Part shown: positions 1,267 through 61,391 of the stretch, piece after piece
Layout: every line of letters starts with the position of its first letter
Numbering within the stretch: position 1 is the first letter of the stretch
Source: Haliotis rubra
Taxonomy: Eukaryota
Assembly: GCF_003918875.1 (NCBI RefSeq)
Contig: NW_025767134.1
Span: forward strand, 744,001-808,000
Length of the DNA: 64,000 bases
Reading direction: 5' to 3'
Position numbers and translations under genes: made by a program
Notes under the pieces: generated by a model
Told to the model about the DNA's origin: nothing
Seen by the model: the letters and a program-made list of their open reading frames with translations, nothing else
Database searches by the model: none

Positions 1267-1800
1267 TTAAACCGACGTATCCATCCATGTGTCCATATCT
1301 ACATCTATAGAACAGGACTTCAGCGATCTGTGAAGGCGGGGCGGGGTGGTTTCACTGATGATCGCATACTCTTCAAGAGGAGGTGACGGGCTTACTGGCA
1401 GATAGCTGGTCCTGCGGTGTAACTGCGAGTTCCACAGGTTCTGGTACACGGGGTCATTCTTCACCAGACTAGCGTTAGACCTGAAGTAAAAAATAGAGGT
1501 ACTGATGATTGTATGTGGGACATTCGTATAATTAACAAGCACTAATTCAATACAAAACACATGTATGCTTAATGTGACATTAGGGACCGATCATGATGTA
1601 TGGCTAGCGGTGAGTGGGTGGTGATGATGATTGTTATGGATAAGTGTGTACAATGCGAATGACCACCCTAAAAATCATGTACAAAGTGACACACACACAC
1701 ACATACACACACACAACTGTTGTCATGTCATGTGCTAAATCTATGCCCCATAAGTTTTAAGCGAAAATCTTAAATATTCACATGTACGAAATTGCTGATA

Positions 1801-1845
<45 letters not shown>

Positions 1846-4800
1846 CTCGCCCACCCCCACCTTATCCCCCTCAGTACATGTTTTTGATGACTCCCTACCT
1901 CCCCAAAACATCATTTTCAGCATCGTCGGGTGTAATTTGCAACTATGTATTCAACTTCAAGTATATATACCTGCTATTGCCTTTTCTCTGTCGCCAACAG
2001 TCCCCACATAGGACTGCTATTGGTTCTTGGTAGCGTTGTGAACTCCCTGCTATTTCCAGGGCACTCATTAGTGCCTTGTATATGAACGCATACTGCTCCT
2101 GAAGATATCAAACATGGATTTTATTCGTGTAATGTTGTCATTAGCGATTTATTGTTTCAGGCAAAATATATTTTCTTGATATTTGGTTGTCATAATATCG
2201 GTATAATGTAAATTCCATGATAAACGAATGTGTTCCATGCAAATATATATTACATCTTGTATTAAACTGGTGTATTCAGTTTGTTTTGTTCTACATTTAC
2301 AATAATAGTCGAATGTTGATAGATGTCATATGCTTGTTTCAAATCCCCCTCCACATGGGTGGACATTTGCTATTGTATTTATGTATAACAGATTCATATT
2401 TACTTTGCATTCATATTTATAAACTGGTGACCTACTAGCTGTAACAACGGAAACATGCATGTCCTTTAAATGTCACTCACTTTCACTTTCACTGACCCCA
2501 GGGTCAAATAAACGTGTCTGGCTTATCTGGGTTCGATGGCCAAAAGAACACTTCGATTTGTAAACAAAAGGTCTTGTCAGAAAGATATCGCTGACAAAAA
2601 TAGAAGGATATAATATGCATGATGGCACATGAAGCTCTGATAAACTGAACTGAAATTGAACTCACTTGTGTCTGAACCATTTTCATCCTCTGTTGGCGGA
2701 GGTTCTGTACACAGGTGTAAATACATACTCGGCCCTCTTCCCTGGCCTGGTCAAGTAGATAATCCAAGGCAATGAAGGTTCCCGTGCGTCCAATGCCAGC
2801 GCTGAGAAATGTGATGCAGTGAAACTTACGATTATTCTTTAAAAGGGAAAATGCAGTTTCATGGCGAACACATGTAAATGTATACATGATGCGTCTTCCG
2901 GACCACTGATGCAAACCTGGCTAACGTGGACGGTACTCCTACAGAATACCGGATACCTACCAGCCATATTGTTTAGTGTCACGTCACCCTAACCCTAATC
3001 CTAACCCTAACCCTAACCCTAACCCTAAACCTTACCCTAACCCTAAGTAAACTCGTGTGCTTTCAAAGATGACGGAATGTATCCGGTATTCTATAGTCTT
3101 ACCAACCTGGACAATCCACTGAGAAAGGTATTGTCCCGATTAACGAGGTAAACTTTGTACCAGCGTCATGAAATGTGCTAGCAGGATAGTAGTATGTGCA
3201 TTTCAGTAACCACATAGAATTAAAGCTTTATAAATAATATGATGGACATGTATAACGTATTCTTCGTTAACTGTTTATTAATTATATGGTATTTCAATTT
3301 CACTAAATTATTACATTACATTTTCATTACATTCATTGCTTGCGTTAACATTATACATTCCTCACTGTGTTCGTTCTGTTCATTTTACCGGCGAAATTAT
3401 CTACGTTGAAAACGTATACTGAGTGAATATGTTTGACATCTCATGCTTTTAAATCAAATATTCAGTCTGCGTAATGGAAATTTTCGACGATTTTGACCCT
3501 GGCATCGTTTTTGTATTTTTGAATGCATTTACTGTCACTGTATTTTCGCACACGGAGACTGAAATGCCATGATTCTGAAACTGAAACAAAAAATTGCCGT
3601 GAGAAATTCTTCCTTATGAAGTGTATGCACACAGTACCTGCAGTGTATTAACAAAGGTCCAGATGAATCTGTTTTTGTGTCCTTGACAACCCTGTGGAAA
3701 TCTAGAATTGCAGTTGTCTCCCCTGGAACACCGTGGTCAGGCCAGGAGGTAAAATGAAACTGGCGGATTAATCTGTGGTCAGAGTGTTCCTGAAAAAAAC
3801 ACGCACAAAAAACTGCAGATCAAAACACATGGTACCTTATGTTCGTTTATAAATTTATTTAAATTTAGCACAAGTTGCCCTTCTAAAAACACCAAGCAGG
3901 TTACATAAATAGAAGCATACTTATACACTGAATATCATACGCCAATAAATTTCGATTGTTTGACTAGTTGTCGTAAAACAATTATTGCAATTGGTTCGCG
4001 AGCGAGAATATGTATGTGAGAATACAATTGCCAGCGAATGTAATCTGACGACAGAAATGTACTCATACCTTCCAAACCGCTAGTTTCCGGAGAGTATAAT
4101 TTTTATACACCTTTTCCTCAACACACTGAACGTACACCTTGCCATAGGTTGAGAAATCGGAGCTGCAGAAAGGCCAGTACATCTCACACTTCACCTAAGT
4201 GTAACATAGTTCAACACATATTAGCTCAAATATATGTTGTGTAGTATTCATTCCCCACCTGACATATTACGTTTGTATGAATATCTTTATAGAGTGTCAG
4301 TTCAGCACCGGTATTTAGTAGATATTTTTGGCATACTGTTAAATGTTTATTGCTCTACATGAATGTGTTACCTTCCTTGCTTCAACAAGGTTAGTTAGCA
4401 TGACAATCTTGGTGGTGTTCAGCTGCCATATCATCCTCCAGAAGTCCGCTACGACTTCTACTGAGGGTCCTGTAACACAGAAATAGAAGCATATACAGCA
4501 GGCAAATTAAATTGGCTTCGCTTTTGTTTTGGTAATGGATGATTCAATTTGTAATTTAATTTTGTGTTTCCTTTTACCTTACAAGTATGTATTTTATTTC
4601 AAAGAACTCCAATGCTGAAACTTGAAACGCAGTGCTTATTAAACGGCGTTTGAGGTAATGAATGCATCGTTATGGTTGCACTAAATATGGCAACCTATTT
4701 GCATGTATAGAGACTGTCTTGCATCTACGTAATTGTATTTTTACAGTATCTATCAATGTTATTCAGTATATCAAGGAGTAGTGGGAGATAATTCAGTTGG

Positions 4801-7800
4801 TTTATGACCCTTTGAACTTACCTTGGGCTGCCACGTACTGGATGTGCTCTTTGTACCCCTGGAATATAGCAATAACATTCTATGCACACGGAAATAATCA
4901 TCATTGAAAGTAATTTAGTAATGCAATTTCCAGTGTTTTCAATGGTGTGATACGTAGCTAGGGGAAATCATGAAATTTCAAAACCAGTGCGTTCGTACAT
5001 ATTTATGGAAACGTATCTCTCAAGCAGGTACAAAAATACTAAAGTCAATTTTATATATCATGTAACATCAATATGACCAAAAGTATATGATTATTAAATG
5101 CCAAACGAAAACGCATTTCATGTTTATTCAAAGGATTAAGTGGTGCGTATACTTACATCGATGAATGAGGCATTGATGTAATCACTTTCACTCTTGTCGT
5201 CAATCTCGAGGGACACTCGCGTTGCGTCATCTGCAAATATATTAAAACAGGGCGATCCAAAAATTCACTAATTTAAAAATATGAGCTTGGCCTTTAACTG
5301 CTTGGATGTAATAAGTGTACAAACGACTACCACAGGTCAGAGCATATATTTCTTTTTAAATACGTAATTAAGGTTGTTATTACTTTCAGAAATAAAGTAA
5401 ATACAAGGATATGAAAATGCAAAACAATAATGATAGACCTAATACACTAAACTAAGTGATACTAATCCACAGCATAGCCACAAATTTAGGGTAGTGACCG
5501 TATGTTAACGTACATGGCAATACATCTCTGTATCTATTCTTCGTGACGTTGTCATCCAGAGAGCCATATTTTGCATTTTCGATGTCAGGACAAGACAGCC
5601 TCTGGAAAAAACAGTTTAGAAAATATATGATCTGATAACAGAAGGCGAAATGAACACATGCATGAACATGAGAACATATTGTCAATTATGTTTTTAAACA
5701 TTGTTACTATCTCACCTGGAACTCGTCTATTATCTGCACGGATGACCCCTCACCTATCAGATCCTCACATAGGATCACCCGTTGCAGGTCATCATCTGTG
5801 AAGCATTGACAACTCATAATACTCAATCAATTGATCACCTCATAAATTGTATTGTATACATTTTACAATTTTATTTTATTCTATTTTTTTTTTTTTTTTT
5901 TATTTATGCATTGTGAGTATCTTTAAGAATACATCTTCAAAAGGGCATAGAAAGAATGTATATGTTTGAAGGGAATATGTGATAATTGAAATAAAGATAT
6001 AAAAATGCTCTAATACAGTCTGTTAAATACATACGCCACACATTTAAATACATACCTTGACATGAAGCTGTGAACATTTCTTGTGATGATGAAGGGTTCT
6101 GTTGGAAATCATAAGGCTTCAGATCATTGTTATTTAGTGAATTCATTTCGCATGTCATCTCTTTGTCTTGGGACTTATTCAGTCTTCTCTTTTTTCTCCT
6201 AAAATGTAAAATACAGTCACATATTACTTAAAAGCTTTACAATAACATATCGTTTAAAAGGTCTCTCAAATGGTAAACAGTTTCCTCAGAAATACCATAT
6301 TCAGTTGCTGAACTGCAATTATTGTACTCAATGTTATATTCTAATACTTTAACGCGTGACACATTATGTTTCCATCCATTGTTAAGAAATCAACATATTT
6401 CATATTAGTACATGTGTAATACAACACTTACTTCTTCCACAAAAACGCCATCAGAGAGAGAAACGATGCAGCTACAACCACCGCAAGCATCACACTTCCG
6501 ATCCATATCAGTAACGAAGTATGACCTTCAAAATAATTCAATCTTGTTTGTCACAGGACTACGCAATAAACAGACGACCTAAAAGACATTTCTTGGAACA
6601 CAAACAAATACATGCAAATGACAAAATTGTCAAGGTATTCATAAATATACACCTCGTCAAAAGTATCGCACCACCCATTTGAAAGTCAAAGTAGAAATAT
6701 AATGTTCGGGTTTTTGTTATACTCCACGTACATATGTAATATTCGACACCATCCGTCATCATAATATCACAAACACATCCTGTTCCGAGCTGCACGTGCA
6801 TGCTTGCCTTAAGCATGCATGTTCCGGGGGTCAGTTTGCTATAAATGCAGTACACACATAGCCTCCTTTTGGCGTATGTTATGTTGGCAGACGCAGCTAA
6901 AATTTGATTGTAGGCATAAATTTTGATTAAAAAAGCTTGATTTGGACCAACCAGTGAAATGCCCAACGACGTCCACCCTTCACAAATCGGCACCGCAATG
7001 CCCGTTTAGCCTGGTGCCAAGCACGTGTTAGCTGGAACCTGAGGACATGGAGAAGGATCCACTGGTCCGAAGAAAGCCGATTTTTGCTGCAACATACAGA
7101 CGGGAGGGCACGAGTTTGGAGGCAGCGAGGCACAGCATATGATCAGCTGAAGTTCCAATTTGGGGTGGATCCGCCATGGTGTGGTGGTATTGTTCCTATC
7201 ACTGTAAACTTGACCTCATCGCAGTTCCCGAGGCATTGAATGGAGAGAGGTACCAGAACTTGAAACTGGACGGTGCTGTAGTGCCTCACTTCAATAACCA
7301 TGCCCTCGCCACTTCATGGTCGATAATGCCAGACCACATCGTGCTCGAGCTGTTGTTGAGCATCTCGAACACACCACCATTGAGACACCATGGCCAGCCA
7401 GAAGTCGAGACATGAATCCTATTGAGTATTTGTGGGACATTTTGGGACGTAGAGTGAGAGCAAGGGATCCTCCAGTTCAGAACCTTCAGTAATTGCCCCA
7501 TGCATTGCATGATGAGTGGCAGCAGATCCCCCAACTGAGAATCAGACGTCTGGTGGCCAGCATGAGACGGCGTGTAGAAAATGTTATCCAAGTGCGAGGC
7601 GGTTACACCAGATACTGAGTTAGCCAGTCATTGTGGACCTTACTAGTGTGTTCGACATTATTAAATTGTGAACTGTGATGTGTGTCTGTTGTAACGACAC
7701 CGGCAGCCATACTTATTTCACCTTATTTTACGGCGATTTGAGTGAACTTCAGTTTGCTACAACGAAACCTTCAATAATTGTTCAACTTCGGTCTTGTGTT

Positions 7801-9484
7801 GTCAATTTTCTGACTGAACGCTCACATGAGGCCATCTAAACAGTTTAATGTGCTTTTCTAAGCACCATTTTTATAAGGTTGTAGATCCAGTTTTACTTAG
7901 AGAAAAAATGTGGGTGGTGCGATATTTATTGACGAGGGGCATATGTGGTTAGATTATTTATTTATACTCTATAGGGCAAATAACATTTGTAAGTAGAGAA
8001 CAAGTACACATATATATGCTGCTGACTGCTGGTTCTACATACTGCAGTGATGTTAGATAAAGGGGGGTAGGTAACAGGGGTTCTCATTTTTCAATACATC
8101 ATGACAGTATCGTTAAATCTTATTGATCGTGTGAAATGGTATTTCGACTTTGTGTAATATAACGCCCCCCTTAACCTGACAACCCTCACTCACTCCGTAA
8201 ATGATATTGAACCACCACATTTCAATTTCCATAGAGACAGAAGCTCACACCTGAATGTACATCACACTTGTCCCCTGTGTACCCCGGCTCACAGCTGCCA
8301 CACTCCCCTGTGTCTCTATTCACATCCACCTGTACAGTGTGAGGGACAAGGTGTTCTACAGTGTGGACCGTAATACTGGGGATTCTGACACGATCCTGTA
8401 CAACCATCACCATAACGTTCACACTGTGTACAGGCTGTAGGACAGTTCACGCCACAGTTATCTCCCTTCTTGCCGGCCACACATCCCTCTGTACACACAA
8501 CACGGGTGTTGTCCATCTGACAGCGAGAGTTGAGACAGGTGTCTGGACAGTCATGTTGACACTGTATACCATAGAACCTGGAGTCCAGACACTGGAGACA
8601 CTCTCCAGATGACGTCACATTGACACAACGAGGTAGACACACACCGTCAACACAGGTCACGTTGTTTACCGCCACAGTTGGTGCAGTTTATTGCATGGCA
8701 TGACTCTTTAAGCATATAAGGAAAATAATCATTAAAGATGGCACATAAATCAAACAAAGACGTGGGTTTGCACCTGTATGGGTAGAAATGTATCCCCATT
8801 TGTCTCGGGTATTTTTCAATTGACGCTACTAAATTAATGTCTTGCAAAAATAGATGCATTTCAAAGCATTGTGAACATATAATATACTGTACACGGATGA
8901 ATCTGAAAACTACTAAAAAATACACAAGCCTTTGTTTTCTTCACATATGTCGCAGTATTCCCCTCTGTACCCCGGCTCACAGCTGCCACACTCCCCTGTG
9001 TCTTTATCACATCCACCTGTACAGTTGGGGGGACAGGTAACATCACACTTGTCCCCTCTGTACCCCGGCTCACAGCTGCCACACTCCCCTGTGATCCTAT
9101 TACATCCACCTGTACAGATGGAGGGACAAGGTGTTGTACAGTTCTGACCGTAATACTGGGGATTCTGACACGGTCCTGTACAACCATCACCATAACGTTC
9201 ACACTGTGTACAGGCTGTAGGACAGTTCACTCCACAGTTATCTCCCTTCTTGCCGGCCACACATCCCTCTGTACACACAACACGGGTGTTGTTCATCTGA
9301 CAGCGAGAGTTGAGACAGGTGTCTGGACAGTCATGTTGACACTGTTTACCATAGAACCTGGAGTCCAGACACTGGAGACACTCTCCAGATGACGTCACAT
9401 TGACACAGCGAGGTAGACACACACCGTCAACACAGGTCACGTTGTTACCTTCACAGTTGTTACAAGGTGTGCTTGTAGAAGAAA
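1267..9484 (-). CDS. Gene A: receptor-type protein tyrosine phosphatase with EGF-like ectodomain, TM and single PTP domain
   Basis: Phase-consistent GT-AG exons (minus strand): 9484-8945 (EGF), [8705-8251 second EGF exon, frameshifted], 6525-6432 ([28 protein letters not shown]), 6198-6056, 5795-5716, 5601-5514 (KNRYRDVLP), 5230-5157 (DYINASFID), 4858-4822 (YVAAQG), 4469-4372 ([15 protein letters not shown]), 4194-4069 (KCEMYWP), 3789-3638 (WPDHGVP..IHCS), 2801-2666 (AGIGRTG..MVQTQ), 2098-1971 (EQYAFIY), 1480-1267 (tail, stop). All classical PTP motifs are present. Confidence 0.93.
1801..1843. repeat. (CA)n microsatellite in last intron of gene A
   Basis: About 20 CA units. Confidence 0.95.
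2932..3097. mobile_element. Small inverted-repeat element containing (CCCTAA)n; Helentron/HINE-like non-autonomous element (inferred)
   Basis: tacagaataccggatac (~2940-2956) and gtatccggtattctata (~3079-3095) are inverted copies flanking about 10 CCCTAA units (2987-3046). Confidence 0.55.
6650..7939 (+). mobile_element. Tc1/mariner DNA transposon, internally deleted and decayed, in an intron of gene A
   Basis: TIRs cacctcgtcaaaagtatcgcaccaccca (after TA at 6648-6649) and tgggtggtgcgatatttattgacgagggg. Broken transposase: [47 protein letters not shown]. Confidence 0.9.
8251..8705 (-). pseudogene. Second EGF exon of gene A carrying two +1 frameshifts
   Basis: Near-copy of 8945-9484 with AG/GT ends. 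It reads GGTAAACAAC instead of GGTAACAAC (~8665) and TGTGAATAGAGAC (~8320, premature TAG). Length is 455 = 453+2. Confidence 0.75.
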
Positions 9485-10080
9485 CTGTTGAATGGAAAAT
9501 ATAATATTGTATGCCATCTGTTCAATGTACAAATTAAACATCTGTAATATTGCCATAGTGTTCACGATTTCTGAACATGAAACATTCAGAGAGGAATGGA
9601 AGTGCTCCACAGACTAGCATATTTCTTTCGCCCAGGACAATGTTTGTTTAGTTTTTGTGAGATTCACTAAATTAATTAGTAGACAAAATTATCCTGTTTG
9701 TATGGATAAGTATCGTGCTGAGCAGCATTAAGGTCGGTGGAAGACAATCGTTCATCCTGAATGGCAATATTTGACAGACGTTGGTGATGACTCCAGTCTC
9801 AAATATATTTTCCAACCTTATAGATGTAGATAAAAGAGTATCTGCATGATATTCTGTATCGAACGGGGAAACGTATCATATCACACACCATGAATAAAAC
9901 TTACATATGTTAGAGCATGGGTTATAATTTTGGATGGGATGCAACTCAAAAATGTACTATAATCTGTAAATTTACTAAGAAAGTGTAATCCCTGATATAC
10001 CATATGTTACATTTGACCACTGTCTAAATGGCATTGTGTATTCATAAATAACAAGTTTATAAATAACGAAAACCTCTTAC

Positions 10081-10163
10081 CGTTCAGGAAAAACAGAGGT
10101 AGAAAGACGATGGGTTGTCCAGTAATGGCATCGTGGATTACGTGCGTCCATTGTGAAGTTGTT
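10081..10163 (-). CDS. Candidate leader (signal-peptide) exon of gene A
   Basis: ttttgcag acceptor and G|gtaaga phase-1 donor. Encodes hydrophobic GQPIVFLPLFFLN, joining in frame to (V)SSTSTPC. No in-frame ATG inside the exon, so the start codon is uncertain. Confidence 0.45.
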
Positions 10164-10749
10164 CTGCAAAACAAGGATAGCGACGAGATTAGTGACATTG
10201 GGTGATATATCAACATAGAATCTTGCTTTTATATATCATTTGTTATTCCAAATGTTTTGAATGTGTGTTGCCCAAAGAAACAGGATATCATTAACATTTA
10301 CTATGTATCGCAAGGATTTGAAGTTTACTTATNNNNNNNNNNNNNNNNNNNNNNNNNNNNNNNNNNNNNNNNNNNNNNNNNNNNNNNNNNNNNNNNNNNN
10401 NNNNNNNNNNNNNNNNNNNNNNNNNNNNNNNNNNNNNNNNNNNNNNNNNNNNNNNNNNNNNNNNNNNNNNNNNNNNNNNNNNNNNNNTGTCACATTTGTG
10501 TAAGTTAAACTGTGATATGCAGTTTGAACAACTGCAAAGTAAATACTTAAAACATCTATAGCATAATTATAGTTCACAATACGGTATTTCAGCGTAAAGC
10601 TATATATGTTGCTTATAGCTTAAGGACCGATGTGTAATGTATAATGCTTAAGAAGGAGTTCGAACCCTGTACACAAAACATCCGGTTTATGAAGTAAGAC
10701 AAAATTGAATAATTGAGTTATCGAGTTTATTTATTTTATTGCTATTTAT

Positions 10750-15689: not shown

Positions 15690-17716
15690 TTAAACTGGAG
15701 AATCTCGGGATGTTTCTACAACTGCTGCTGTGATATACTTCACATGGACATTCGTCACATCACACGTTTGTCCAAATAAAGTTACTGAATCTAAACTTGA
15801 CTCATTTTCTGTGTTTCTGTATTTTGCAAAAAGAAACTCAGATTCACTGTCCGAATGCGACCTTTGAACAGTTGTTTCGTCTGGTTTGTTTGGCTTCCCA
15901 AGGTCACAAGAAGCTGCTCGCCGTGCACTACAGGGAGTACTCCCAACCGGCCTCAACAAGATCTTGCAGTGTCCAGTTTTATCTTCGGTAGTTTTCCTGT
16001 GCTTCTCGTACGTACTTCTTGCCATCACGTCATTGTTCGGAGCCTGTTGTAAGATTCTTCCCCGGTTATCTTCTAAGGCGCCGGTTTCGTCCATGGCAGA
16101 TGTCCTTGCCTCTGTAGCTGAGTCTATGTCTTCATCCTGGATCTCCCAGTACTTGTTGTACACAGTAGACCCGCTGTATCCGCCACCATCTACATCACGT
16201 CCTCTTGCAGATCTTCTCTCAAAAAGTCGTCTCCAGTTCCATATAGGCCTGAAAAAGCAAGTCCAGCACTTAAACAGGAAATGAAGATTAAATCTTTTTC
16301 ATTATTAATTATTTTTATTATCATGTTTCTAATTACTGCCAACTGTACCTTTGATTGAGTCTGATAAGCTTTGAACATCGATTGTACAATATTAATGCAA
16401 ATGTTCCGAACAGAAGTGTTCCAAAGACAGCACACACAAGCTTTAGGGTCTCATTTGATTCTTTTTGCACATTCGGAATGGAGGTTGAACCTGAAAGAAA
16501 ACAATCAAGGACATATTTGAATTCCATATTAATACTTCTGTATAGTGAGTGGTTGTGTGAGTATGGAGCCCTTAAACAAGATAATAATTCGAGTCATATG
16601 AGGGTTAACTGCGAGGAAAACCATGTTTTAGACAGCCACTTAAAACCAACGAGCTTGAGCATGGCGCTAACACATTGAGAAACATAATCTGGACGCATTG
16701 GGACTTGAACCCGGGATCATAGGTTTCTGGATTACCCAATGGGCGCAACTCTCCCCAGCGAATTGCGGCGCTTTATATGATTAGACGATTGGGCCATCCG
16801 TTCCCATTATACTGTCTCTCTGAAGTCTCTCTGCTTCACACGGGTACACTGTATGAAGCCCATTTCTGGTGTCCCCCCACCGTGATATTGCTGGAATATT
16901 GCTTAAAGCGGCGTAAAACAAAACTCACTCACTCACTCACTGAAGTCTCTCTGAAGTCAAGAAGTTACATAAACTACAGTGTCTTTATTCTTCTTTACTT
17001 TCCAGATTGATTGTACTACATTAGCAACTGAGACAACTAGCAGGATCCTTATCCAATTATAACTGGAACAATATTTTTATAATAGACACCTGTTGATGGG
17101 GTAAGTACATCCTTGCATGCCTGGCACACCTTACACGGTTGTGTTGGTGTACTGCAGCTGTCACAGTGGAGCGGGCATCCATGTTGACAGTTTACACCAT
17201 AATAGATTCCGTCAGAGCAGAGCTGTTTACATCCCTCTGTATTGGCACAATTCACACACAGCGGACATTTTACACCACAGTAGTCGCCCCTCCAACCAGT
17301 CCGACAACCGTTACACGTGCCCGACTGTCTATCACAGCCATTAATGCAGTTTGCTGGACATTTGTGACAGTTCTTTCCATAAAAGTTGTATTTGCATTGA
17401 CCAAAACAGGTACCATTGTAACGGAAACAGTTCAGGCAGCCTATTGGACAATCCACTCCACAATTATCTCCCTTCTTGCCTGCTACACAGCCATCTTTAC
17501 ACACGACACGGGTGTTGGTAACCTGACAGCGAGAGTTGAGACAGGTGTCTGGACAGTCGTTCTGGCACTGTGTTCCATAGAACCTGGAGTCCTGACACTG
17601 GTCACACTCACCTGATGACGTCACCGAAACACATCGAGGTAGACACAAGCCCTTAACACAACTCACGTTGTTGCCGCCACAGTCAGAGCAAGACGTCCCG
17701 AACGGATATGGTGTAC
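15690..17716 (-). CDS. Gene B: EGF-repeat type-I receptor with YWEI/CDL tail (most divergent tail)
   Basis: Exons 17716-17090 (EGF, 627 bp, phase 1-1), 16490-16349 (TM LVCAVFGTLLFGTFALILY), 16248-15690 (YNKYWEIQDEDIDS ... DSVTLFGQTCDVTNVHVKYIT). Leader exon not found. Confidence 0.85.
16835..16941 (+). mobile_element. SINE family 1, 3' half
   Basis: gaagcccatttctggtgtcccc..gctggaatattgct..gcggcgtaaaac(actc)n. Confidence 0.8.
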
Positions 17717-19094
17717 CTGAACAAACAATAGCATGACGAAATCAAACAGAAAATATAACTGTGTAATATCGCAAAAACCGGAAAGCCAAAGAAAATGACG
17801 ACTGTGCAAATCTAATAGGATAGTCTTATGGTTTCTCCTGTAAATCGGTCATGATAGGTAAAACAATTTCTCCATAATGCAAATAGCAACAGTGACTTAT
17901 GAAACAGGTCATACAGTAAACTAAGGATGGAAACGTAAGTGGCCTGGATGAAAACTGGTAAAATGAACTCCCCTATTGCCGAGGTGTTAAATTAGTCAAT
18001 AATTTATTTGCATATTTGTTACTGGTTCGAATCCGGATTTCAACCTAACGATGATCTGTATCTTGCAAACCGAACTACAGATGCGTGACTGAAGGACGTC
18101 AAACTTCAGCTTCTAATTAACACTGATCGGGACCCCCATGTTATTACTGTCATAGTTTTGACTTTATACACCGTTTGTAAGGGCTAGGTGACTTTACATA
18201 CCTTGATGCGTAGCAACAATGAAGACCAATACCGTTTGTAGCATGCTGCGTACATTGACGTAACGTTTAGCGATGCCACGGGTCAGACCCTTTCGGTTTG
18301 TCATGTCTGTAATAAACAAAATATCTTTTTCTGGAAGTTGCATGAGAAAACCGATATAGGTCATCTTACAGCTCCACTTTACTCGCATCGTTCAGGAGGA
18401 GATAACATGCACCCAGCTTTACCTTTAGGTATTCAATCGTAACAGCGTGTTCTCATTGTCTCCGGGTTTCTTATTTCACTAGAAAAAACAAAACACAGAT
18501 ACAAGGAAATTAAATCTACACAAAATGTTATTTTCACAAATGGTGTCGATTTCCTTCAAGAAGTGTGCCGTGTTTGTTAATTAGATATAGATGTCAGCAA
18601 AAGTCCTTCAAAAAGAATGCATGCCTGATAAGGGTTGATTTAATTGATTATGTTTCAGAAAATATTTATATAAAGTACACATTATGTCATCTGTATACCA
18701 TAACCATGTGAGTAACAGGCAGTTTTCAGAATAAGTTATGCGACAAAATATCAGCTATTTGGGTATGGTGATATACGTAAATGAACGACCTACCATACAC
18801 CTTCATCTGCAGTCACACAGGCCACATCCGGAGCTGCCACCATATCACCCCACGGTCACGGTCAGAACCGCATTGTTTAAACAAAACAGGAGGCAGGGGG
18901 CGACCAGTCTTCGACGTCGCCGGAAGTCACTAGATATGCATTGGTATCTAAGGTCGTCCAGGATCCTGCAATTGTTGGTTCGAATCCAGTAACTTAATTA
19001 TGACCCTTGGCTTGTCATCACAATACAATAGTCCAGGGATGGCATCGAAGTGTTACACATATAAGTGGTCTAACATCTGAGTCATTCACCAACA

Positions 19095-27400: not shown

Positions 27401-27645
27401 TATCTCCCTTCTTGCCAGCCACACAACCCTCTGTACACGCAACGCGAGAGTTATTCACCCGACAACGAGAGTTTTTACATGTATCTGGACACCTGTTTTC
27501 ACACTGTTCGCCATAAAACCTGGAATCTCGACACTGCAGACACTCTCCAGATGACGTCAGGTTGAGGCAGCGGGTAGACACGCACCGTCAACGCAGGTGG
27601 AGTTGTTTCCGTCGCAGATGGTGCAGGCATCCCTTGAAGAAGTAG
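24407..27645 (-). CDS. Gene C: EGF-repeat receptor with YWEI/CDL tail; 1-bp deletion in first EGF exon (pseudogene or assembly error)
   Basis: Exons 27645-27080 (566 bp; CTACCCGC instead of CTACCCCGC near 27572), 26491-25985 (EGF), 25389-25284 (TM IICGLLAAMALMCGAFAGI), 24944-24407 (DYWTKKYWEIYDNDLDS ... LIQKTDSIIFIEQNCDLASVNVSYLSPDK). Confidence 0.85.
25510..25672 (+). mobile_element. tRNA-derived SINE family 1, full length
   Basis: ggggcggtggggtagtctagtggttaaagcg..gggttcgaatcccc head; 13-bp TSD tcttcttagacgg (25497-25509 / 25673-25685). Confidence 0.92.
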
Positions 27646-37006: not shown

Positions 37007-40000
37007 TTAAGTTTGGGACTTTGGCGTGAGGTATTTGACGCTGACTTTTGACAAGTCGCAGTTTTTCTCAATGAAGAGAACTGAATCAGTCTTTTCAATC
37101 AACCTTTTTGTGTCGAGTGACATCTGACAATAATCAATATCAGTTTCACTTTTAGCTGAGGCAAGAATTGAATCGTCCCCATTATTCAGTACTGAAGACT
37201 CAGTAAAAGGGAACAAGCCATCATCATTATCATCGTGGTACTTCACAGTTGGACGTGCTTCACAAAACGAAGCAGACATATCTAATCCCGCCCCAGTGTC
37301 AGACCCATGACATGTTTCAGTATTGGGAGTCCCTGGATCAGGGTTTACGTTTTGGTCCTCTATTGTATTGGATTCATGCTGTTCCTGTTCCGATTCTGCT
37401 GTTCTCCCAGCAGCCGTGTCTGCTGTAGCAACTGAACATGAACTACGCGCAGAAGGACGAGATGCTTGTTCTGCACGTTGATCGGAGTTGACATCCTGTT
37501 CATTTATTTCCCAGTATCTGTGAGTCCAGTAATCGCCACAGTTGCATCGACGTGTTGTGTCAGTTCGGCAGGAGGCAGGAACCTGACTGGCAAAGACAAA
37601 CACAGAATGTATTTACTACTAGTTTCCTACTCTTGTATCACAAATGGCTGATAAACACATTGAAAGAATTTATATAAAGCTTCGATGACACATGCCTAAT
37701 GATAAACCTATACCAATCGCGACTGAATACTTGACAATATACCATAATGTATATTCAATTCTAGCTTATCATCTGCATTGAAATCTGAGAAAGGCTAGAT
37801 AATCCAAAGAAGGACACGGAAATCACCATGTTAAGGTATAGAGTATGTGGTACAATTGAATTGTGTTAATTGACACGCCGTTGCAAAGAGGTATATACGT
37901 TTACCAATCTGACTACATATCTGCTATACTTACCTACTGCGGCATCGATAACGCTTCATCAGCACTGATACAGCTGCAGCCAAACCTAGCAGCACCACCA
38001 CAACCAGCACGCCGCTGACGATTTTCGTGGTCAGCCTCGGGTCACCTATAACGACATGCATACATGATAACACAAAAGTAAACGTTTAGCAAAGATTTAC
38101 TAATAAATTGAAAACATAGAACAAAACTTTGATGCGTTCATAAAACTTTTCATATTATTTAGAAAGTTGCTATCGCATTAATTTGATTGAGCAGACAAAA
38201 CATTGAACGTGCCCTTACATAATTACCAATTAACTCATGACTAGAAAGCATAACAATGTTCCAGCCGCTTTTATACAGGAATTCAGATGTCTTATCTCAT
38301 TTACAAGTAATTTTATTGCCGGTTATACGTTCATCATATGACCGAAACTAAATTATGTACTCAGAAAACATTTCTGAGGAAAACAAAACTAGTATAAACA
38401 AGGTATGTTTGCCTTGATTACACGCTCCATCCTCACAACGAAGCTTGCAGTATCTTCCTCTGTAACCAGGTTTACAGTTGATGCAGTCGCCTGTCAGTCT
38501 GTAACAGCCACCAATGCAGTTGACTGGACAGTCACGGTGGCAGGCTTCCCCATAGGACCTGCGATCTGTACATGGCTCCACGCAATCATCAGCTAAACGC
38601 TTACACTCTGTGCAGTTTACTGGACAGGAAATATTACAAAATGTGCCTCTATATCCGGGCACACAACTATCACACACCCCTGTTAATTTACCACAAACCT
38701 CTCTGCAGTTAGATGGACACGAGTGATTACAATATTGACCGTAATTCCAGATATTTAGACATCGTCCTATACACTTATTCCCATGGCGTTCGCATGCTGT
38801 ACATAAGGCAGGGCAGTTAATGTTACAGTACTTCCCACGGTACCCTGTCTGGCATGTGTCACAGTGCTCCCCACTGTACCAGGGTTTGCAGCTGTGACAC
38901 ACGCCTGTGTTCTGGTCACACCCATCTCTACACCCAGAGGGGCATACTTCGGTGCAGCTGTTTCCCATGTAACCCTCAGAACAGGTGTTGCATCGCCCTG
39001 TGCTTTTATTGCAACCATTCTTGCAGTCCTCGGGACATGTTGTTTCACATTTGGGACCAAAATACCCAGGGTTCAAACATGGACCTATGCATTCATCCCC
39101 AAAGCAGTGTGTACAAGATGGCGGGCAGTCTACACCACAGTTGTCTCCCCTCTTCCCAGTCACACACCCCTCTGTACAAACGACACGTGAATTGTTCATC
39201 TGACAGCGAGAGTTGCGACATGTGTCTGGACAGACATGTTCACACTGAACACCATGAAATCGGATGTCACGACACATAAGACACTCTCCAGATGACGTCA
39301 CGTTGACACAGCGAGGCACACAGACACCGTCGGCACAGGTCACGTTGTTGCTGTTACAGGCGGAGCACGGTGAAGGACCTTGGACAACAGTGATAAATAC
39401 TGACGCTTTGCATTATGAATGAATAGGTTCTGCTGGTATTGTTGAAACATGTTTGAGCTCAGTATAATAACAATGACTACAAATTGCCAAAGATAGTACC
39501 ATAATCTGATTAAGTAATCTCGTATTTTACCATTTTAAAATTATATGTATATGTTCCTTTCTGTTCAGTAGTAATCATTGTTTACTTGTAGTATTCATGA
39601 TATTTTTCTTCGTTCATCATAACATATTTGAGTTGAGAACAAACCTGTTACAATGGGTACCATGCATATAGCCGCCATCACACAGAACACCGGGGGTCGC
39701 AATACCAGAAAGAAAGGCACCATATTCCTACATGGAAATACAGTAATACACATCATGAAGTAACAGAACCATCTATGGTCGTGATATATCAAGCAATAAT
39801 GACACAATGATCATTTGTTCCAATACTGGTTTGCGTGGATTACGTTTACTATACCAAAGCTCGTTGGTTTCCAAACAAACCTATAGTATTATAGTATTTG
39901 TTACCTCTATTCAAAAACAACTGTCCTGATCACATACGAGGATGCGAATATCAACAGCAATCAGACGTGTTGCTTTTACAATTGTATTTGTAACTTGAAT

Positions 40001-55050: not shown

Positions 55051-56172
55051 AGACAGACATATTTATTTGTATATGTGGCCTTGAGGCCAATAGTACATGT
55101 GTACAATAATAGCAGTGCATTTATGCGCAACCTGTAAATACGCGAGTTATAGGAACATAAATAAATCCATAAACACCCATTCACAATTTACATTTTTTCT
55201 CTCAACATAAGTATGTGGTACAACACAAGGGCTAGCTTAAACAACAAGTCAATGTTTTCTGTGCGAAGTAGCATACAGAATTTATGTCTCGACGGTTGGT
55301 TATAGAAAAAATAAGGCAAATATGTTTCTCTTATTTTCTAAATATTTCGGGCATACAAGTAATACATGGTACTCATCTTCTTGCGATAAATTGCAGAATG
55401 GACATTGGATATCTATTGCATTTGAAGTTTTGGCAAATCGCGCCGCTTGGACTTTGAAGTTGTAAGCGTTACATCTAAATTTAGTAAGCGTACGCTTAAG
55501 TTGTGGTGATTTAATCTTTGAAAGGTAAATTTCTGTATTAATACAATATTTATATTCTGAATAAAAGTTGACACAGGTTGACGACGTTATTTCATTATAC
55601 CAGTCCTGTTGATAAATGTCTTTGCATCTCTGCTTGAATAATTTGATGAAATATTGTGTATTACTTACATTTTGGGCGATCCATACATTTCCAAAGCCAT
55701 GACTAAAAATAATAGTTCTAACGAATGAAACCCAATTAATATCTCCGGTATCATCTAGTGTTTTAAGCATCTTGAATATCGTGAAATTGGTTGTCTCATC
55801 AATCTTAGCCAATATGCAATAACCCGACATCGGGCGTTAATAAACAGTGGAAAACGTCCACATTCAGCTAAAATAACCTTATTCGCAGTTCTGTAGCCAA
55901 CACGCAACAAGAACTTACAGAACTTTGAATGTACCTTTTCAATATTCTTGTTTATGTTAATGCCCCATATTTCAGAGCCGTACAACAGAATTGGTTGAAT
56001 TTTTCCATCAAACAGTTTAAATGATGCATGGATCGGTAATTCTTTATATTTGCATATGAATTTCTTTATGACATGTAGGGCTCGTTCAGCTTGCATAGAT
56101 AATGTTTCACAGGCTCTGGAGAATATATTTCTACACGAAAATATAATACCTAAATATTTGTAATATGACACC
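55051..56172 (-). mobile_element. 5'-truncated non-LTR retrotransposon (LINE ORF2 C-terminus; RTE-X-like by motif, inferred)
   Basis: YKYLGIIF..LFDGKIQPILLYGSEIWG..AECGRFPL and Zn-knuckle CPFC..EDEYHVLLVCPKY, with one frameshift. 14-bp TSD acacatgtgaagtc (55037-55050 / 56173-56186); empty site at ~40852-40865. Confidence 0.92.
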
Positions 56173-57096
56173 ACACATGTGAAGTCTATTTGATATAGTA
56201 TATCTCATGTTCTACGAATGTAAATGTTATCCCGGCAATAATTACTTGCAATTGTAATTGTAATTATATTTAATCTTTCAAGCTAGATCAGGAGATTGGA
56301 TGACCAAGTTGTCTACGGGATCACAATTCACTGTCCAGAGTTGCTTCCCTTGCCCACTCCGTGACCTTTGATCACGAGTTCGAATCTTGTTCGTCACTTC
56401 AGACTTTAAACCCACACTGGGCTTACAAGCCATGATATAGCTGGGAAAATGTTAAACCCTACTCACGTGCTCATTCACTCAAGTAGATGAAAGTACATTT
56501 ATGTTATAAAAACAACAAATGTTGGAATATTATTACTGCGCTGCTTTGTTTACATGCTACTTTCCAACCTCTAGATGTGAGGTTATTTCCCTAAACTCTT
56601 CACCATGATGTCATATGATAGTGTGGTAAAGACTGAAATGCATGTATATATATGTTTCACGGGTTTTCATTTTCTTGTAGATGTGAAGGTAAGTGTAAGC
56701 TGTCATGTGTGCATGTAAAAATTCTACATGTTGAAACAACTGTGACATTGCCTCGTAACAGCTCAAAAGGAACCTTATTTTGCCTATAAATAGGAAAATG
56801 AAATTAGGTTTGTCTCGAACAGTTACGCGCGGCAAATGGATATTTTCGGAAGTGTTTCTGATTATAACAGAAATATATCTTACATACTCACAATCTGAGA
56901 TCAAGGAATTGAGAAATTAATCTCTGTTGCTATTTGAAGATCCCATATTCAATCCACCTCACATATGAAAATACATACCAGCATATCACAAATTCGGTGT
57001 ATGAAAACGAAAGCTTTATTGTGCAATATGGATATACACAGAACAAGCACTATTTTTTGAACAACTAAAATGGTTTCATGGACATTTTTTCACCAA

Positions 57097-59596
57097 TTAC
57101 AATGTATTTGAAGCGGTGTTGACTTTGTCAGGTGTAAGATATTTCACATTGACACTTGCTAAATCAAGATGTTGTTCTATAGCTATTATAGAATCCGTCT
57201 TTCTAATGAGATTCTCAATACGCTGTTGAACTGGATTGTCGATGACTCCATCCCCTTCCTGATAAGTCTGTAGATCGGAGTTACTGACAGTCAAACCTAT
57301 TATGTTCCTCTCTGATGCATCATCTACCTCACTGTCCACCACGTCCACCTCTGGCGTTTCTGCAACAAGCGGTTCATAAGTCGAATCATGTCCACATTGA
57401 TGGACCAAAGCCACGTGATCTGCCGATGACATTGCACCATCAAACCTTGGAACTGATGTTCTGACTTTTACATTGTCCAAGGGGATATCCTTGTTTTGGA
57501 CAGGGCGTCTATTGGGTATCTGAGGCACAGGTAAGTTGTTACAGTCAGATTCAGATCCCAAATCCTTATCGTGGATGTCCCAGTACTTGTGTGCCCAGTA
57601 CTCACTACCATCACTCTGTCCCAGATCCTGAGGACTGGGAAATGGTTCCCTTCTGTGAAGAAAAGGACTGTTTAGTTCATGTTAAATTGAATATACACAT
57701 GTATATATATTGAACATATAGCTGTATCTATATAAAATGTTGTTATTTCAAGCATACCACATAGCATTTGAAATATGTGTAAACAGATTCAATTCTCAAA
57801 TTTCAGATTTACATTATATTTGTGTCTGCATATGAGGAAACAAGAATCTGTGACTAGGGAAGTTCTCTGCACTATTTTTTCCTATATGATTCTGCTGGTA
57901 CATGAACATTCTCACCTATTCTGACATTTGCTCTTGCGTCTGGTTAGAATGACCACAGCTAAGGTTGTTCCAAGCGTCACAAGCACTGCCAGTACTCCAG
58001 CTGTCACTTTCAGGGTCAATATAGTGTTACCTGCAGTGAAAAACATGCATCGTAAATGATGGTTGGAGCGAAAAGCCTAGAGGTTGAAGTTTTCATTCGT
58101 CATGCAGAAAGTCCAGTTTCGAATTCCCCAAACCGACACAACGTCTTTGCAAATTACGCTGTGCTCTTCCTCTAATATTGCTAAAAGCGACGTGCTAAAA
58201 GCGTCCGATGTATTTTTTACTCTTTAAAGGAAAGGTTCAATATTGTTCTCATCGTATGCCTAACCTTTGAAACAGGAACACTTTGTAAATAGTATATTGT
58301 ACATCATGTCAGACTCATCTATATTAACACACTCATCAATATTAACAAAGATACTATATAGTGGACAGTGGCAGTAATATTTCAAATAGGTTCAGGCCGT
58401 TGTATTTTTATATGCATTAATTTATCTTGCTACATATTAGGCTAATACTTTTACAGATACCTTCATATCATATGTCTTATGAACATGTCTGATATTTGGT
58501 AGAAGCTCGTGTGTACAAGTCACCTGAGTCACAGGCACCTCTTTGACAGAGACCGTCCGTACACCTCGTGTATCCATCGGCACAGAGAATACATCTCCCC
58601 GTGGTCTTGTCGCATCCAGCACAACTTGCAGGGCATTGTATTGAGCAGAAAGGACCGTAGTACTGGCTGTCTGGACATGATCCTATACATTGCCCACTAT
58701 GTTGTTCACACTGAGTACAGTTGGAGGGGCACGTTTCATTACAGTACGTCCCCGTGTAACCTGCCACGCAGCTACCACAGTCACCCTTGTCTTTATCACA
58801 TACATCTTGGCAGTAAGGAGAACAGGCAATATTACAGTACATTCCCCTGTTGCCTTCCACACATCTGTCACAGTACTCCCCACTGTAACCCTCAACGCAA
58901 CTTCTGCATTTGCCCGTGGCTTTCTTACAACCATCCAAACAGTTATCAGGACATGGGGTTTCACATTGTGAACCGTAATACTGGTCGTTTTGACATGATC
59001 CAATACAAGCATCTCCTGTTTGTTCACATCTTGTGCAAGATGAAGGACACAGAGATGCACAATTTTCCTTTCTTACCATCCACACATCCATCTGAACAAA
59101 CGGTACGGGTGTTGTTCATCTGACAGCGAGAGTTGAGACAGGTGTCTGGACAGTCATGTTCACACTGTTTACCGTAGAACCTGGAGTCCAGACACTGGAG
59201 ACACTCTCCAGATGACGTTAAATGGACGCAGCGTAGTAGACACACGCCATTGTCACAGGTAACGTTGTTACCGTTACACTCGTTACACGGCGTTGTTGAT
59301 GATGCAACTGCAGTTACAGTGAAAACATATTTACAAAAGAGAATAATCTTAGTACTAAAGGAAACACATCGTACAGCATAATGGCACAGTATAATTGAAT
59401 AAAACTGTTTGGAATGTACTTACTGCTATAAATAAAAACTTCATGATAAACTATTTCACAAAATTATCGAGTGATTGAGCGATCATGTTCTGGTGGTATG
59501 CGAAACTCTATTTGTTTACCAACCTGCTGGGGTACATGACAGCAGGATTACAAGTGTTGACATCAGGACTACCCAGAATGTCGTGCTTTTCTGCAT
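57097..59596 (-). pseudogene. Gene F': duplicate of F with 2-bp deletion in the EGF exon
   Basis: Leader 59596-59524, EGF 59307-58524 (784 bp; AAAGGAAAATTGT vs AAAGGAGAAAATTGT in F, ~59066), TM 58030-57916, tail 57652-57097. Confidence 0.85.
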
Positions 59597-61316: not shown

Positions 61317-61391
61317 ATGTCTGTATGTATGTCTGTATGTATGTCTGTATGTATGTATGTATGTATGTATGTATGTATGTATGTATGTATG

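Follow-up and report, generated by a model that had tools for sequence, protein, structure and literature searches.

The window that we analysed, 64,000 nucleotides of the Haliotis rubra scaffold QXJH01000449.1, carries eight genes (A to H) that are all located on the minus strand, from the ATG of A at 59596 to the stop of H at 1267. These genes share one build, in which a leader is followed by a phase-1 EGF cassette and then by a transmembrane (TM) exon, which was located in 8/8 genes with an acceptor in phase 1 and a donor in phase 2, gene H included. The cytoplasmic end is a single-exon tail in A to G (7 genes) and a tyrosine phosphatase (PTP) in H (1 gene). An N-terminal Cys module of 118 residues was recovered in 8/8 genes with HMM scores of 140-218 bits. 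The seven tail exons begin in phase 2 and are alignable, with two conserved blocks, and the PTP domain of H is single, intact and encoded by ten exons. The original prediction of eight co-oriented genes with a shared leader/EGF/TM plan, a common N-terminal Cys module, seven single-exon tails with two Tyr-bearing blocks (7/7 align) and one intact PTP was therefore borne out. The EGF repeats are not distributed one per exon; the cassettes are large phase-1 exons, one to three per gene, with several EGF repeats each and 27-61 Cys, in which CxxGxxGxxC patterns are present. The RefSeq models agree with this splice plan fully for D and G and partly for E and A, and RefSeq has no model for B, C or F. 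Five N runs are found in the region 1267-59596, none of them inside a mapped exon, including those at 10333-10487 (182 bases upstream of the ATG of H), 12044-12219 (intergenic, between H and G) and 45585-48365 (between the leader of C and the stop of B). The order B-C-D in the gap-free H. asinina sequence is the same as on the H. rubra scaffold.

Gene A (57097..59596, minus strand, as are all genes below) is of the tail type and is a recent copy of C, to which it is 97.3% identical across 2.5 kb, introns included. It consists of a leader (~59520-59596), an EGF cassette (~58524-59312) that a 2-base deletion near 59067 puts out of frame, a TM exon (57916-58030) and a tail (57097-57652); RefSeq P0002 covers only the TM and tail part. 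The segmental duplication giving gene A (53309..62133) comprises 53309-60945 and 61513-62133, which match 38158-45584 and 46944-47553, with copies 86-97% identical. It includes a fragment of the EGF exon of D with its intron, lying upstream of B, and an additional insert at ~55050-56170, whose open reading frames (55300-56174) gave no reverse-transcriptase or other credible match in Pfam. Gene B (49790..52632) is also of the tail type, with a TM exon at 50551-50656 and a tail exon at 49790-50303. Its EGF exon is open from 52632 to a donor at 51654 and is a fused double cassette, in which N-module 1 is followed by a partial N-module 2; a search with the H. asinina leader did not reveal a leader exon. 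Gene C (41756..44230), a tail-type gene that is intact as read, has its leader at 44153-44230, EGF cassette at ~43150-43940, TM exon at 42556-42670 and tail at 41756-42311, and is orthologous to H. asinina P0053 (identity of 87% in the ectodomain and 73% in the tail). Gene D (37007..39723), of the same type and intact, contains a leader (39643-39723), a single EGF exon (38411-39376), a TM exon (37936-38043) and a tail (37007-37588). RefSeq P0027 (578 aa) maps exactly onto D, its orthologues are P0004 and P0051, and it is transcribed, with a quarter of its sampled words present in RNA-type runs.

The tail-type gene E (32158..34927) has a leader (34892-34927), an EGF exon (34025-34462), an extra Cys exon (33691-33795), a TM exon (32951-33064) and a tail (32158-32760) with an ITAM-like YWEI-x9-YVSI. 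Its extra Cys exon ends in phase 0 and its TM exon requires phase 1, and in the corresponding RefSeq model, P0015, the TM exon is out of frame, with a stop at 238 aa. In gene F (24407..27702), also of the tail type, the leader and the start of the N-module occupy 27572-27702 and the remainder of EGF exon 1 occupies 27075-27572, followed by EGF exon 2 (~25986-26498), the TM exon (25283-25390) and the tail (24407-24946). A frameshift is located near 27572 and the ATG is absent at the start position of the H. asinina orthologue; the orthologues P0006, P0019 and P0047 are intact. Gene G (15690..18388) is intact and has the most diverged of the tails (leader 18200-18388, EGF 17088-17714, TM 16348-16488, tail 15690-16247), and RefSeq P0012 (504 aa, three isoforms) maps exactly onto it.

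The 5' part of gene H (8916..10151, minus strand) contains a leader (10086-10151), whose ATG is not in frame with its hydrophobic core and which has an indel of one base at a CCC run, and a first EGF cassette, H-up (~8916-9476), with an intact open frame and a phase-1 donor. RNA contigs over H-up span 8950-9460, at least one of them being from a paralogue. The second EGF cassette, H-down (8249..8690, minus strand), carries two insertions of one base each when compared with H-up and B, and RNA shows its donor at 8249 spliced to the TM exon. The 3' part (1267..6523, minus strand) starts with the TM exon (6431-6523), which is followed by cytoplasmic exons at 6056-6197, 5716-5795, 5514-5601, 5156-5230, 4821-4857, 4369-4468, 4069-4191, 3640-3789, 2666-2803, 1970-2098 and 1267-1479. 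Two N-module cassettes in tandem are thus present in gene H and likewise in its orthologues, which are compact (7.3 and 8.5 kb) and of which one isoform is without the second cassette. GT-AG joints were found in RNA contigs for seven introns of H, including 6523|8249 between the TM exon and the EGF cassette; the other six are in the TM/phosphatase part. The H orthologue P0037 matched Pfam PF00102 at positions 1-233 of 234 (E 8e-82), and a single exon of H from the window matched this family on its own at E 1e-13. All catalytic motifs are present in H, namely KNRY, the WPD loop with its Asp, HCxxGxxR(S/T) and the Q loop (QTQEQY), and there is one PF00102 stretch, with merely 110 residues beyond the Q loop. 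As judged from its sequence, H is a classical (class I Cys-based) PTP that should be catalytically competent by motif; it is transcribed, and the best RNA runs of D are from different samples than those of H. The C-tail of H contains VYQNL and EEYAII, with EYQNL in the H. asinina orthologue, EYQRL in that of H. rufescens and YENV or YENI in eight PTP paralogues; natural WPA variants, which are without the catalytic acid, occur among the phosphatase paralogues. The current RefSeq model for the phosphatase gene, P0032, is wrong. We rejected it as a chimera, as it joins a B cassette (52194-51652) to the TM exon of H over 45 kb, with a gene range of 122 kb that nests eight genes.

Neither the seven tails nor the C-tail of the PTP belong to any Pfam family, and a search with a tail profile against 1.84 billion proteins, by way of representatives, resulted in 11 matches, all in four Haliotis species. 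The ENA protein P0008 (3555 aa), which resembles the profile in 31 short stretches, was taken to be a repeat artefact and not counted, and the ESM Atlas look-alikes of the tail of F (scores of at most 0.75, low recognition) were generic receptor-tail/adaptor clusters and were likewise discarded. As far as its sequence tells, the tail forms a new family of Haliotis EGF-receptor tails, in agreement with its earlier description as a non-catalytic module with conserved tyrosines from no described family. It is encoded by a single exon, is ~180 residues long and is carried by about twenty abalone receptors. The family was defined by a membrane-proximal Y[WSY][EDV]I and by a C-terminal (K/R)T(D/N/S)SI(I/V)xIE..(C)D(L)..V.V.Y(L/I)(T/S)(P/T), which were found in 7/7 tails of the window and in 26 tails from four species, the C-terminal block being only partly kept in G and the P0060 type. 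When the 26 tails were aligned, Y, I and Y were invariant, placing an invariant YxxI near the membrane and a Y[LI][TS][PT] after a C-terminal helix, and the first tyrosine of the tail block was not invariant. AlphaFold2 predicted these aligned tails to be disordered, with a mean pLDDT of 53, a pTM of 0.20 and no fold, and the C-terminal helix at a pLDDT of 72-79. A YxxΦ is present in 26/26 tails, ~30-40 residues from the membrane, and the YxxI could equally serve as an endocytosis signal. NPxY was found in 0/26 tails, and the seven tails of the window are also without ITIM and hemITAM. An ITIM pattern is present in 4/26 tails at sites that are not conserved, and ITAM-like spacing (YxxI-x9-YxxI) in 3/26, which are the orthologues of gene E only. 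The TM sequences inspected contained no charged residue.

The locus was described in the original prediction as a rapidly evolving recognition locus, and one-to-one conservation across species had been named beforehand as an outcome speaking against this. Genes C, D, E, F and G were found to be one-to-one orthologues across species, with diverged ectodomains. H. asinina has its genes in the same order, B-C-D...G-H, and the G-H adjacency is also found in H. rufescens; the description of rapid evolution was therefore not supported. Within the tail genes, comparison of orthologues showed the ectodomain to be more conserved than the tail. The finding that clustered tail-type and PTP-type genes have an ectodomain family in common was upheld by the N-module HMM and by an ectodomain search of four Haliotis species, which identified ~20 PTP-type and ~22 tail-type proteins, with two further EGF-PTP genes on the H. 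rubra scaffold. Downstream of H there are PTP genes in H. asinina and a Y_phosphatase gene in H. rubra. The count of one phosphatase to seven tails is thus correct inside the window and fails beyond it; the 1:7 ratio is an effect of the window edge, because the phosphatase block continues past it.

The EGF cassettes of B and H are 95-97% identical at the DNA level, and this likeness is confined to the exon, whereas identity between the H cassette and its orthologues amounts to only 92%. A likeness limited to the exon and greater than that between orthologues suggests that the B and H cassettes are under concerted evolution, as in paired receptors, an inference that rests on one 350-base module. 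In AU tests on DNA, the orthology clades were rejected for H (p 0.003 to 0.006) and marginally for B (p 0.043), and the protein-level AU test for the orthology of B did not reach significance (p 0.21). In H. asinina, the pairing of B and H is found in the tree (95/91) and is absent from raw identity. By contrast, the N-modules of A, C, D, E, F and G are 72-88% identical to that of H at the DNA level and have other repeat layouts. Therefore, the idea of a paired-receptor system fits the B/H pair at best and does not extend to the other six tail genes.

We consider it probable, although by no means certain, that the window is one block of a larger locus of exon-shuffled EGF receptors, which end in either a tail or a PTP and in which the cassettes of the B/H type are homogenised. 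Exon shuffling would have put the genes together out of exchangeable modules: a leader in phase 1, at least one EGF cassette in phase 1-1 that begins with the Cys module of 118 residues, and a TM exon in phase 1-2. To these, either the disordered single-exon tail of ~180 residues or a ten-exon, single-domain classical PTP would be added. The tail genes of the locus would then end within the window with A to G, the final seven, and H would open a block of phosphatase genes that extends past the low end of the window. Most of the tail genes, C to G, would be old, stable genes with ectodomains of their own, A would be a recent copy of C, and B would form a 'core' group with the phosphatase genes, whose cassettes may be homogenised within the species through gene conversion limited to the exon or through transfer of cassettes. 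It would be because of this that B and H present a nearly identical outer face on different inner parts. The ectodomains presumably bind a ligand, and the tail may work through its YxxI and C-terminal Y[LI][TS][PT] as phosphotyrosine docking or sorting signals, while H would be a catalytically active phosphatase that is R3-like and has a YxN-hydrophobic motif in its C-tail. The matching ectodomains of B and H could then tune one response in opposite directions. It is doubtful, but worth stating, that B, H and the other core genes are paired receptors of a new build, in which an EGF-cassette ectodomain kept identical by gene conversion is combined either with a phosphotyrosine docking tail specific to abalones or with an enzyme as the inhibitory arm. 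If so, the inhibitory arm would be the phosphatase itself and not an ITIM that recruits one, and the WPA phosphatase paralogues would act as built-in substrate traps or decoys.

It is less than likely, yet worth serious consideration, that the tail genes are endocytic or scavenger receptors, with YxxI as a YxxΦ clathrin-adaptor signal, the C-terminal block as a trafficking or scaffold motif, and the phosphatases as separate neighbours whose cassettes are shared through descent and exon shuffling. The YxxΦ in all of the tails at a similar distance from the membrane, the variable first tyrosine of the block, and disorder like that of sorting-receptor tails are consistent with this, as are the Atlas look-alikes, which are receptor tails and adaptors but all below trust level. 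The SCARF-, MEGF10- or CED-1-like names given by RefSeq agree as well; however, they are derived from the ectodomain by EGF similarity alone, and EMI and NPxY were not found. Moreover, the likeness of the B and H cassettes within the species and the invariant C-terminal tyrosine beside Pro/Thr would be left unexplained. We regard it as unlikely that the locus as a whole works as a true system of paired receptors, in which the tails become tyrosine-phosphorylated when ligand is bound and co-clustered phosphatases with the same ligands dephosphorylate the tails or their partners. A shared ectodomain family in clustered genes, homogenised B/H cassettes, invariant tail tyrosines, ITAM-like spacing in the orthologues of E and a PTP competent by motif would all be expected of such a system, and the WPA variants hint at substrate binding without catalysis. 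However, six of the seven tail genes have only the lower N-module identity to H noted above, with different layouts, and are stable one-to-one orthologues, and the absence of ITIM, NPxY and hemITAM from the tails and of charged residues from the inspected TM sequences argues against it.

Two further explanations were considered. The original prediction had several copies disabled, and small frame-breaking indels are indeed present in A, E, F and H, but these may be errors of the draft assembly; when the missing leader is counted along with small indels, the same may apply to A, E, F and H and perhaps also to B, five genes in all. Alternatively, several of the genes with such lesions (H in its leader and second cassette, A, E and F) may be dead in H. 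rubra. That the array as a whole is largely decaying or mis-assembled, with A as a haplotype copy, E, F and H as pseudogenes and little present function in H. rubra, is very unlikely in our opinion. The indels (three of them in H), the five N runs and the missing RefSeq models for B, C and F point in this direction. On the other hand, in H. rubra each of the ten PTP exons, like every tail exon (7/7) and every TM exon, has an open frame and is conserved, H and D are transcribed, and the orthologues are intact in three chromosome-level assemblies. Furthermore, A and C differ by 2.7-5% and by large indels, beyond what is expected for alleles, and the lesions are indels of 1-2 bases, two of them in short homopolymer runs. 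We give hardly any credence to long-range alternative splicing of the protocadherin/UGT1 kind, in which upstream EGF cassettes of several genes would be spliced onto the TM and phosphatase exons of H. Such splicing would account for P0032 and for a 671-aa product in H. asinina that runs from the start of the H orthologue into the next PTP gene, and all junctions are in phase 1 and hence compatible. Nevertheless, the sole RNA contig crossing the TM acceptor of H joins the local cassette at 8249, the H orthologues are compact, and misplaced RNA evidence can explain P0032, given that the B exon is 95% identical to the H cassettes. The frameshifts in H-down would also give an annotation pipeline a reason to avoid that cassette.

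Vertebrate paired receptors (KIR, LILR, SIRP, PILR and Siglec pairs) are clustered and have like ectodomains on unlike cytoplasmic parts, with gene conversion maintaining the similarity of the exons for the ectodomain. They have an Ig or lectin fold; the inhibitory member recruits SHP phosphatases via ITIMs, and the activating member relies on a charged residue in its TM segment together with an ITAM adaptor. Only B and H resemble them, in having near-identical cassettes on different cytoplasmic parts, whereas in abalone the phosphatase is built into the receptor and most tail genes are without a phosphatase partner. To our knowledge, molluscs have no antibody-type immunity and have expanded surface receptor families instead. 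The abalone locus offers a defined, testable case for receptor signalling in molluscs, with an orphan tail bearing two tyrosine motifs, adjacent phosphatases with the same ectodomain, and one tail/phosphatase pair that is kept alike.

The closest published analogue is the MEGF-phosphatase cluster SudRes1 of Biomphalaria sudanica, in which receptor-like tyrosine phosphatases with MEGF and galactose-binding domains are clustered with other MEGF-domain genes and which was tied to parasite resistance by GWAS (PMC12297450). Both are gastropod loci with many paralogous single-pass multiple-EGF genes, PTP-ended genes beside MEGF genes without a PTP, and paralogous segments from recent duplication. 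They differ in that the SudRes1 phosphatases are described as having a galactose-binding domain and tandem PTP domains, compared with a single PTP and no lectin domain in abalone, and term searches of the paper found mention of neither a shared non-catalytic tail family nor homogenisation of cassettes between PTP and non-PTP genes (PMC12297450). The tail profile search of 1.84 billion proteins gave no sequence link from SudRes1 to the abalone tail. Because this comparable cluster has been tied to parasite resistance (PMC12297450), it is reasonable to consider the abalone locus as a candidate in studies of disease resistance in this farmed animal.

The abalone genes are also similar to MEGF10/Draper/CED-1, PEAR1 and SCARF1/2, receptors that cross the membrane once and combine numerous Cys-rich EGF-like repeats with a long tyrosine-bearing tail. 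Unlike MEGF10/Draper/CED-1, they have no NPxY and a tail confined to Haliotis, and no EMI domain was matched at E up to 0.05 in eight full-length abalone proteins. EGF_laminin matches were borderline, reaching the Pfam cut-off at best (E 1e-4 to 5e-3), and EGF_TEN was weak. A C-terminal YxN-hydrophobic motif is a feature of R3 receptor PTPs (PTPRJ, PTPRB, PTPRO, PTPRH and Drosophila Ptp10D), with which H shares both this motif, as VYQNL in H and YENV/YENI in many paralogues, and a single catalytic domain. In contrast to the R3 enzymes, the ectodomain of H is made of EGF cassettes and not of fibronectin III, with no FN3 match. Membership in R3 by sequence was not supported, since the domain is no closer to R3 structures (225-229 bits) than to D1 domains of PTPRT, PTPRM, PTPRK or PTPRA (240-253 bits). 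The PTP paralogues carry RefSeq names of the 10D-, H-, eta- and PTPRQ-like kind.

All eight genes lie on the minus strand, with the tail-type genes A, B, C, D, E, F and G followed by the phosphatase-type gene H from high to low coordinates, and mapping of their exons revealed a modular build. A short leader ending in phase 1 was located for A, C, D, E, G and H, the leader of F is fused to the following exon, and no leader exon was found for B. Each gene has one to three large Cys-rich exons (cassettes) with several EGF-like repeats in each, and the first cassette begins with a 118-residue Cys module (N-module), which scored 140-218 bits against a single HMM in all eight genes. The transmembrane (TM) exon has an acceptor in phase 1 and a donor in phase 2 in every gene and is followed either by one terminal tail exon, entered in phase 2, or by ten phosphatase exons. 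The common exon plan of the original prediction was thus borne out by the mapped leader, EGF, TM and tail or phosphatase exons, and the array of tail and phosphatase receptors is real, as confirmed by the mapped exons, the common N-module and the RNA joints. The number of Cys residues per ectodomain ranges from 27 to 61, and therefore EGF repeat number does differ among genes, as had been proposed, but the repeats are grouped in cassettes instead of being encoded one per exon. The RefSeq models P0027 of D (578 aa) and P0012 of G (504 aa, three isoforms) coincide exactly with the mapped exons, and those of E and A do so in part. Seven N runs are present in the window, five of them within the cluster span (10333-10487, 182 bases upstream of the ATG of H; 12044-12219, between H and G; and three at 45585-48365, between the C leader and the B stop). 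No mapped exon contains an N run, and the order B-C-D is identical on the gap-free H. asinina chromosome.

Gene H encodes one classical PTP domain with [17 protein letters not shown] and a Q loop. In sequence this domain does not resemble R3 enzymes more than it does the D1 domains of other receptors; what H has in common with R3 enzymes is the presence of a single PTP domain and a C-terminal motif of the YxN-hydrophobic type, VYQNL in H and YENV or YENI in eight of its paralogues. In four EGF-phosphatase paralogues (P0039, P0046, P0048 and P0054), WPA replaces WPD while HCSAGVGRTG is retained, so that the catalytic acid is missing. The change from WPD to WPA is made in the laboratory to obtain substrate traps, and from their sequences these paralogues may be natural pseudo-phosphatases.

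Splicing across the whole cluster is the explanation suggested by the RefSeq protein P0032 (810 aa, LOC124289762), which connects the TM exon of H to the EGF exon of gene B, 45 kb away, and whose gene range of 122 kb has eight other genes nested in it (window 1267-52194 and beyond), with a first exon approximately 60 kb past the high end of the window. However, contigs from four small RNA-type runs, placed on 4350-10330, contain seven GT-AG joints on the minus strand (4468|4821, 4857|5156, 5230|5514, 5601|5716, 5795|6056, 6197|6431 and 6523|8249). These joints connect the phosphatase exons of H to its TM exon, which is in turn spliced to the second of the EGF cassettes that belong to H itself. 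In addition, the H orthologues P0037 of H. asinina and P0028 of H. rufescens, which are 86% and 77% identical, respectively, to H across the TM and cytoplasmic part, are compact, with genes of 7.3 and 8.5 kb. Because the RNA contigs and the compact orthologues contradict P0032, we concluded that it is a mis-model of H, probably caused by the 95% identity of the B exon to the H cassettes together with the frameshifts in the second H cassette. H is a transcribed phosphatase gene that is intact by its PTP motifs and has an EGF cassette of its own. D is also transcribed, since its sequence words are present in RNA-type runs that differ from those used for H but belong to the same study. In H. asinina, a product of 671 aa is annotated (CM074532.1 region L002, 10001-27282) that begins where the H orthologue begins and continues into the phosphatase gene that follows; it represents either read-through or splicing across genes, or else one more mis-model. 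Isoforms of the H. asinina orthologue (P0037/P0056) differ in whether they include the second EGF cassette, indicating that phase 1-1 cassettes serve as skippable exons.

A largely decayed array is another rival reading, and the original prediction held that several copies are disabled. Small lesions do occur in four genes: a 2-base deletion near 59067 in A; a frameshift near 27572 in F, which has no ATG where the H. asinina gene starts; in H, a leader with an indel of 1 base at a CCC run and a second cassette with two single-base insertions; and, in E, a small Cys exon that ends in phase 0 where the TM exon requires phase 1, as a result of which the RefSeq E model stops at 238 aa. However, the reading frame is open throughout the tail exons, the TM exons and the ten PTP exons. 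The lesions are all indels of 1-2 bases in a draft assembly with gaps, the orthologous genes are intact, and transcripts of H are present. The lesions could result either from assembly error or from real decay, and the claim of disabled copies holds only in so far as these small indels are genuine.

The locus extends beyond the window. A search with the ectodomain returned 45 proteins, approximately 20 with a PTP domain and approximately 22 with the tail; all strong matches were from Haliotis, and the others were weak MEGF matches in scallop, snail and oyster. Two further EGF-phosphatase genes, P0046 and P0059, are located on the same H. rubra scaffold (QXJH01000449.1, 927,956 bp, assembly GCA_003918875.1), and H is followed by one Y_phosphatase gene in H. 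rubra and by two in H. asinina. The window thus includes the junction at which a block of tail genes gives way to a block of phosphatase genes. One phosphatase against seven tails is thus correct within the window, but as a ratio it is set by where the window ends. In the N-module tree, C/A, D, E, F and G each grouped with orthologues from other species with high support, G adjoins H in both H. asinina and H. rufescens, and the repeat layout of D and F is fixed between species. For C/A, D, E, F and G, ectodomains are 72-88% identical between species, whereas tails are 56-78% identical. Most tail genes therefore have stable orthology, and the proposal of a rapidly evolving recognition locus is not supported, one-to-one orthologues and conserved gene order being the very outcome named beforehand as contrary to it. 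The exception is A, a copy of C within a segmental duplication of approximately 8-9 kb (53309-62133 versus 38158-47553, 86-97% identity) that also includes a fragment of the D EGF exon and intron. The duplication carries an extra insert at approximately 55050-56170 with two ORFs, for which Pfam gave no credible match.

The seven tails align in two conserved blocks, and Pfam contained no family for them. When a profile of the seven tails was searched against 1.84 billion representative proteins, 11 matches were obtained, ten of which are RefSeq proteins of H. rubra, H. asinina, H. rufescens and H. cracherodii named from their EGF part only (MEGF10/11/6-, SCARF1/2-, CED-1- or PEAR1-like, or uncharacterised); the eleventh, a repeat-like ENA protein, was set aside. 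In this profile search the tail was thus restricted to Haliotis. Few residues are invariant when 26 tails of four species are compared: a membrane-proximal motif, Y-x-[E/D/V]-I, keeps its Tyr and Ile, and a C-terminal motif, Y-[L/I]-[T/S]-[P/T], keeps its Tyr, while the Ser and Glu of a TDSIIFIE block are nearly invariant. AlphaFold2 on this alignment gave a mean pLDDT of 53 and a pTM of 0.20, and the sole confident element was a helix on the C-terminal block (pLDDT 72-79); on this basis the tail is predicted to be a disordered region with short motifs and not a hidden domain. Neither the NPxY nor the hemITAM pattern occurred in any of the 26 tails, and the ITIM pattern occurred in four, at unconserved sites. 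An ITAM-like YxxI-x9-YxxI is confined to gene E (YWEI-x9-YVSI, window 32640-32700) and its orthologues P0005 and P0057, three species in all, and is absent from the other tail genes.

The closest relationship between the two gene types was found for B and H. The N-modules of B and all phosphatase genes form one very similar, unresolved group, and the second module of B clusters with the second cassette of the H. asinina phosphatase (98/94). The first H cassette is 97.1% identical in DNA to the first B module, 96% to the second H cassette and 95% to the second B module, but its identity to the H orthologues in H. asinina and H. rufescens is only 92%; the likeness ends near the exon borders, and the introns are unalignable. 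In the DNA tree, B and H modules cluster by species (support 82/77 in H. rubra and 95/91 in H. asinina), as do the two H. rufescens cassettes (91/93). The AU test rejected monophyly of the three H orthologues (p 0.003) and of the H. rubra and H. asinina H genes (p 0.006), and rejected marginally that of the two B orthologues (p 0.043). The B and H cassettes are therefore homogenised. The B exon looks like the two H cassettes fused without an intron, and we read the pattern as gene conversion or cassette transfer limited to the exon, with a tail gene and a phosphatase gene that lie 42 kb from each other as the partners. Paired receptors have the same pattern of cassette homogenisation, but in the abalone locus it involves only one tail gene of seven; a paired-receptor system, proposed for the whole locus, may hold for B and H only. 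The ectodomains would bind ligands, the tail would signal or sort via its tyrosines, and B and H could act oppositely on one ligand. Alternatively, the tail genes could encode endocytic receptors with unrelated phosphatase neighbours: the YxxΦ pattern is present in all 26 tails, and the conserved tyrosines would suit clathrin-adaptor sorting and phosphotyrosine docking equally well. This alternative would leave the likeness of the B and H cassettes within a species unexplained.

Our literature search found no paper on the abalone EGF-receptor family, in line with the original prediction that the combination is not a recognised family. The closest precedent in the literature is the SudRes1 locus of Biomphalaria sudanica (PMC12297450), which has been linked to schistosome resistance and in which MEGF/galactose-binding receptor phosphatases are clustered with other MEGF genes. 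Unlike SudRes1 as described there, the abalone locus is without a lectin domain and has a single PTP domain, a common orphan tail, and cassette homogenisation across two gene types.

Tc1/mariner-type DDE_3 transposase remnants were observed on the plus strand at 7316-7492 (E 5e-8), in the H intron between the EGF cassette and the TM exon, and at 22623-23024 (E 1.5e-3), between F and G. A (CA)n/(TG)n microsatellite occupies 1744-1910 in the intron preceding the last exon of H. Finally, 36 bases at 10005-10040 were covered at high depth in RNA contigs (61 in run X1) whose flanks of approximately 250 bases on both sides differ from the window, and this segment is a short repeat common to an abundant transcript from elsewhere.
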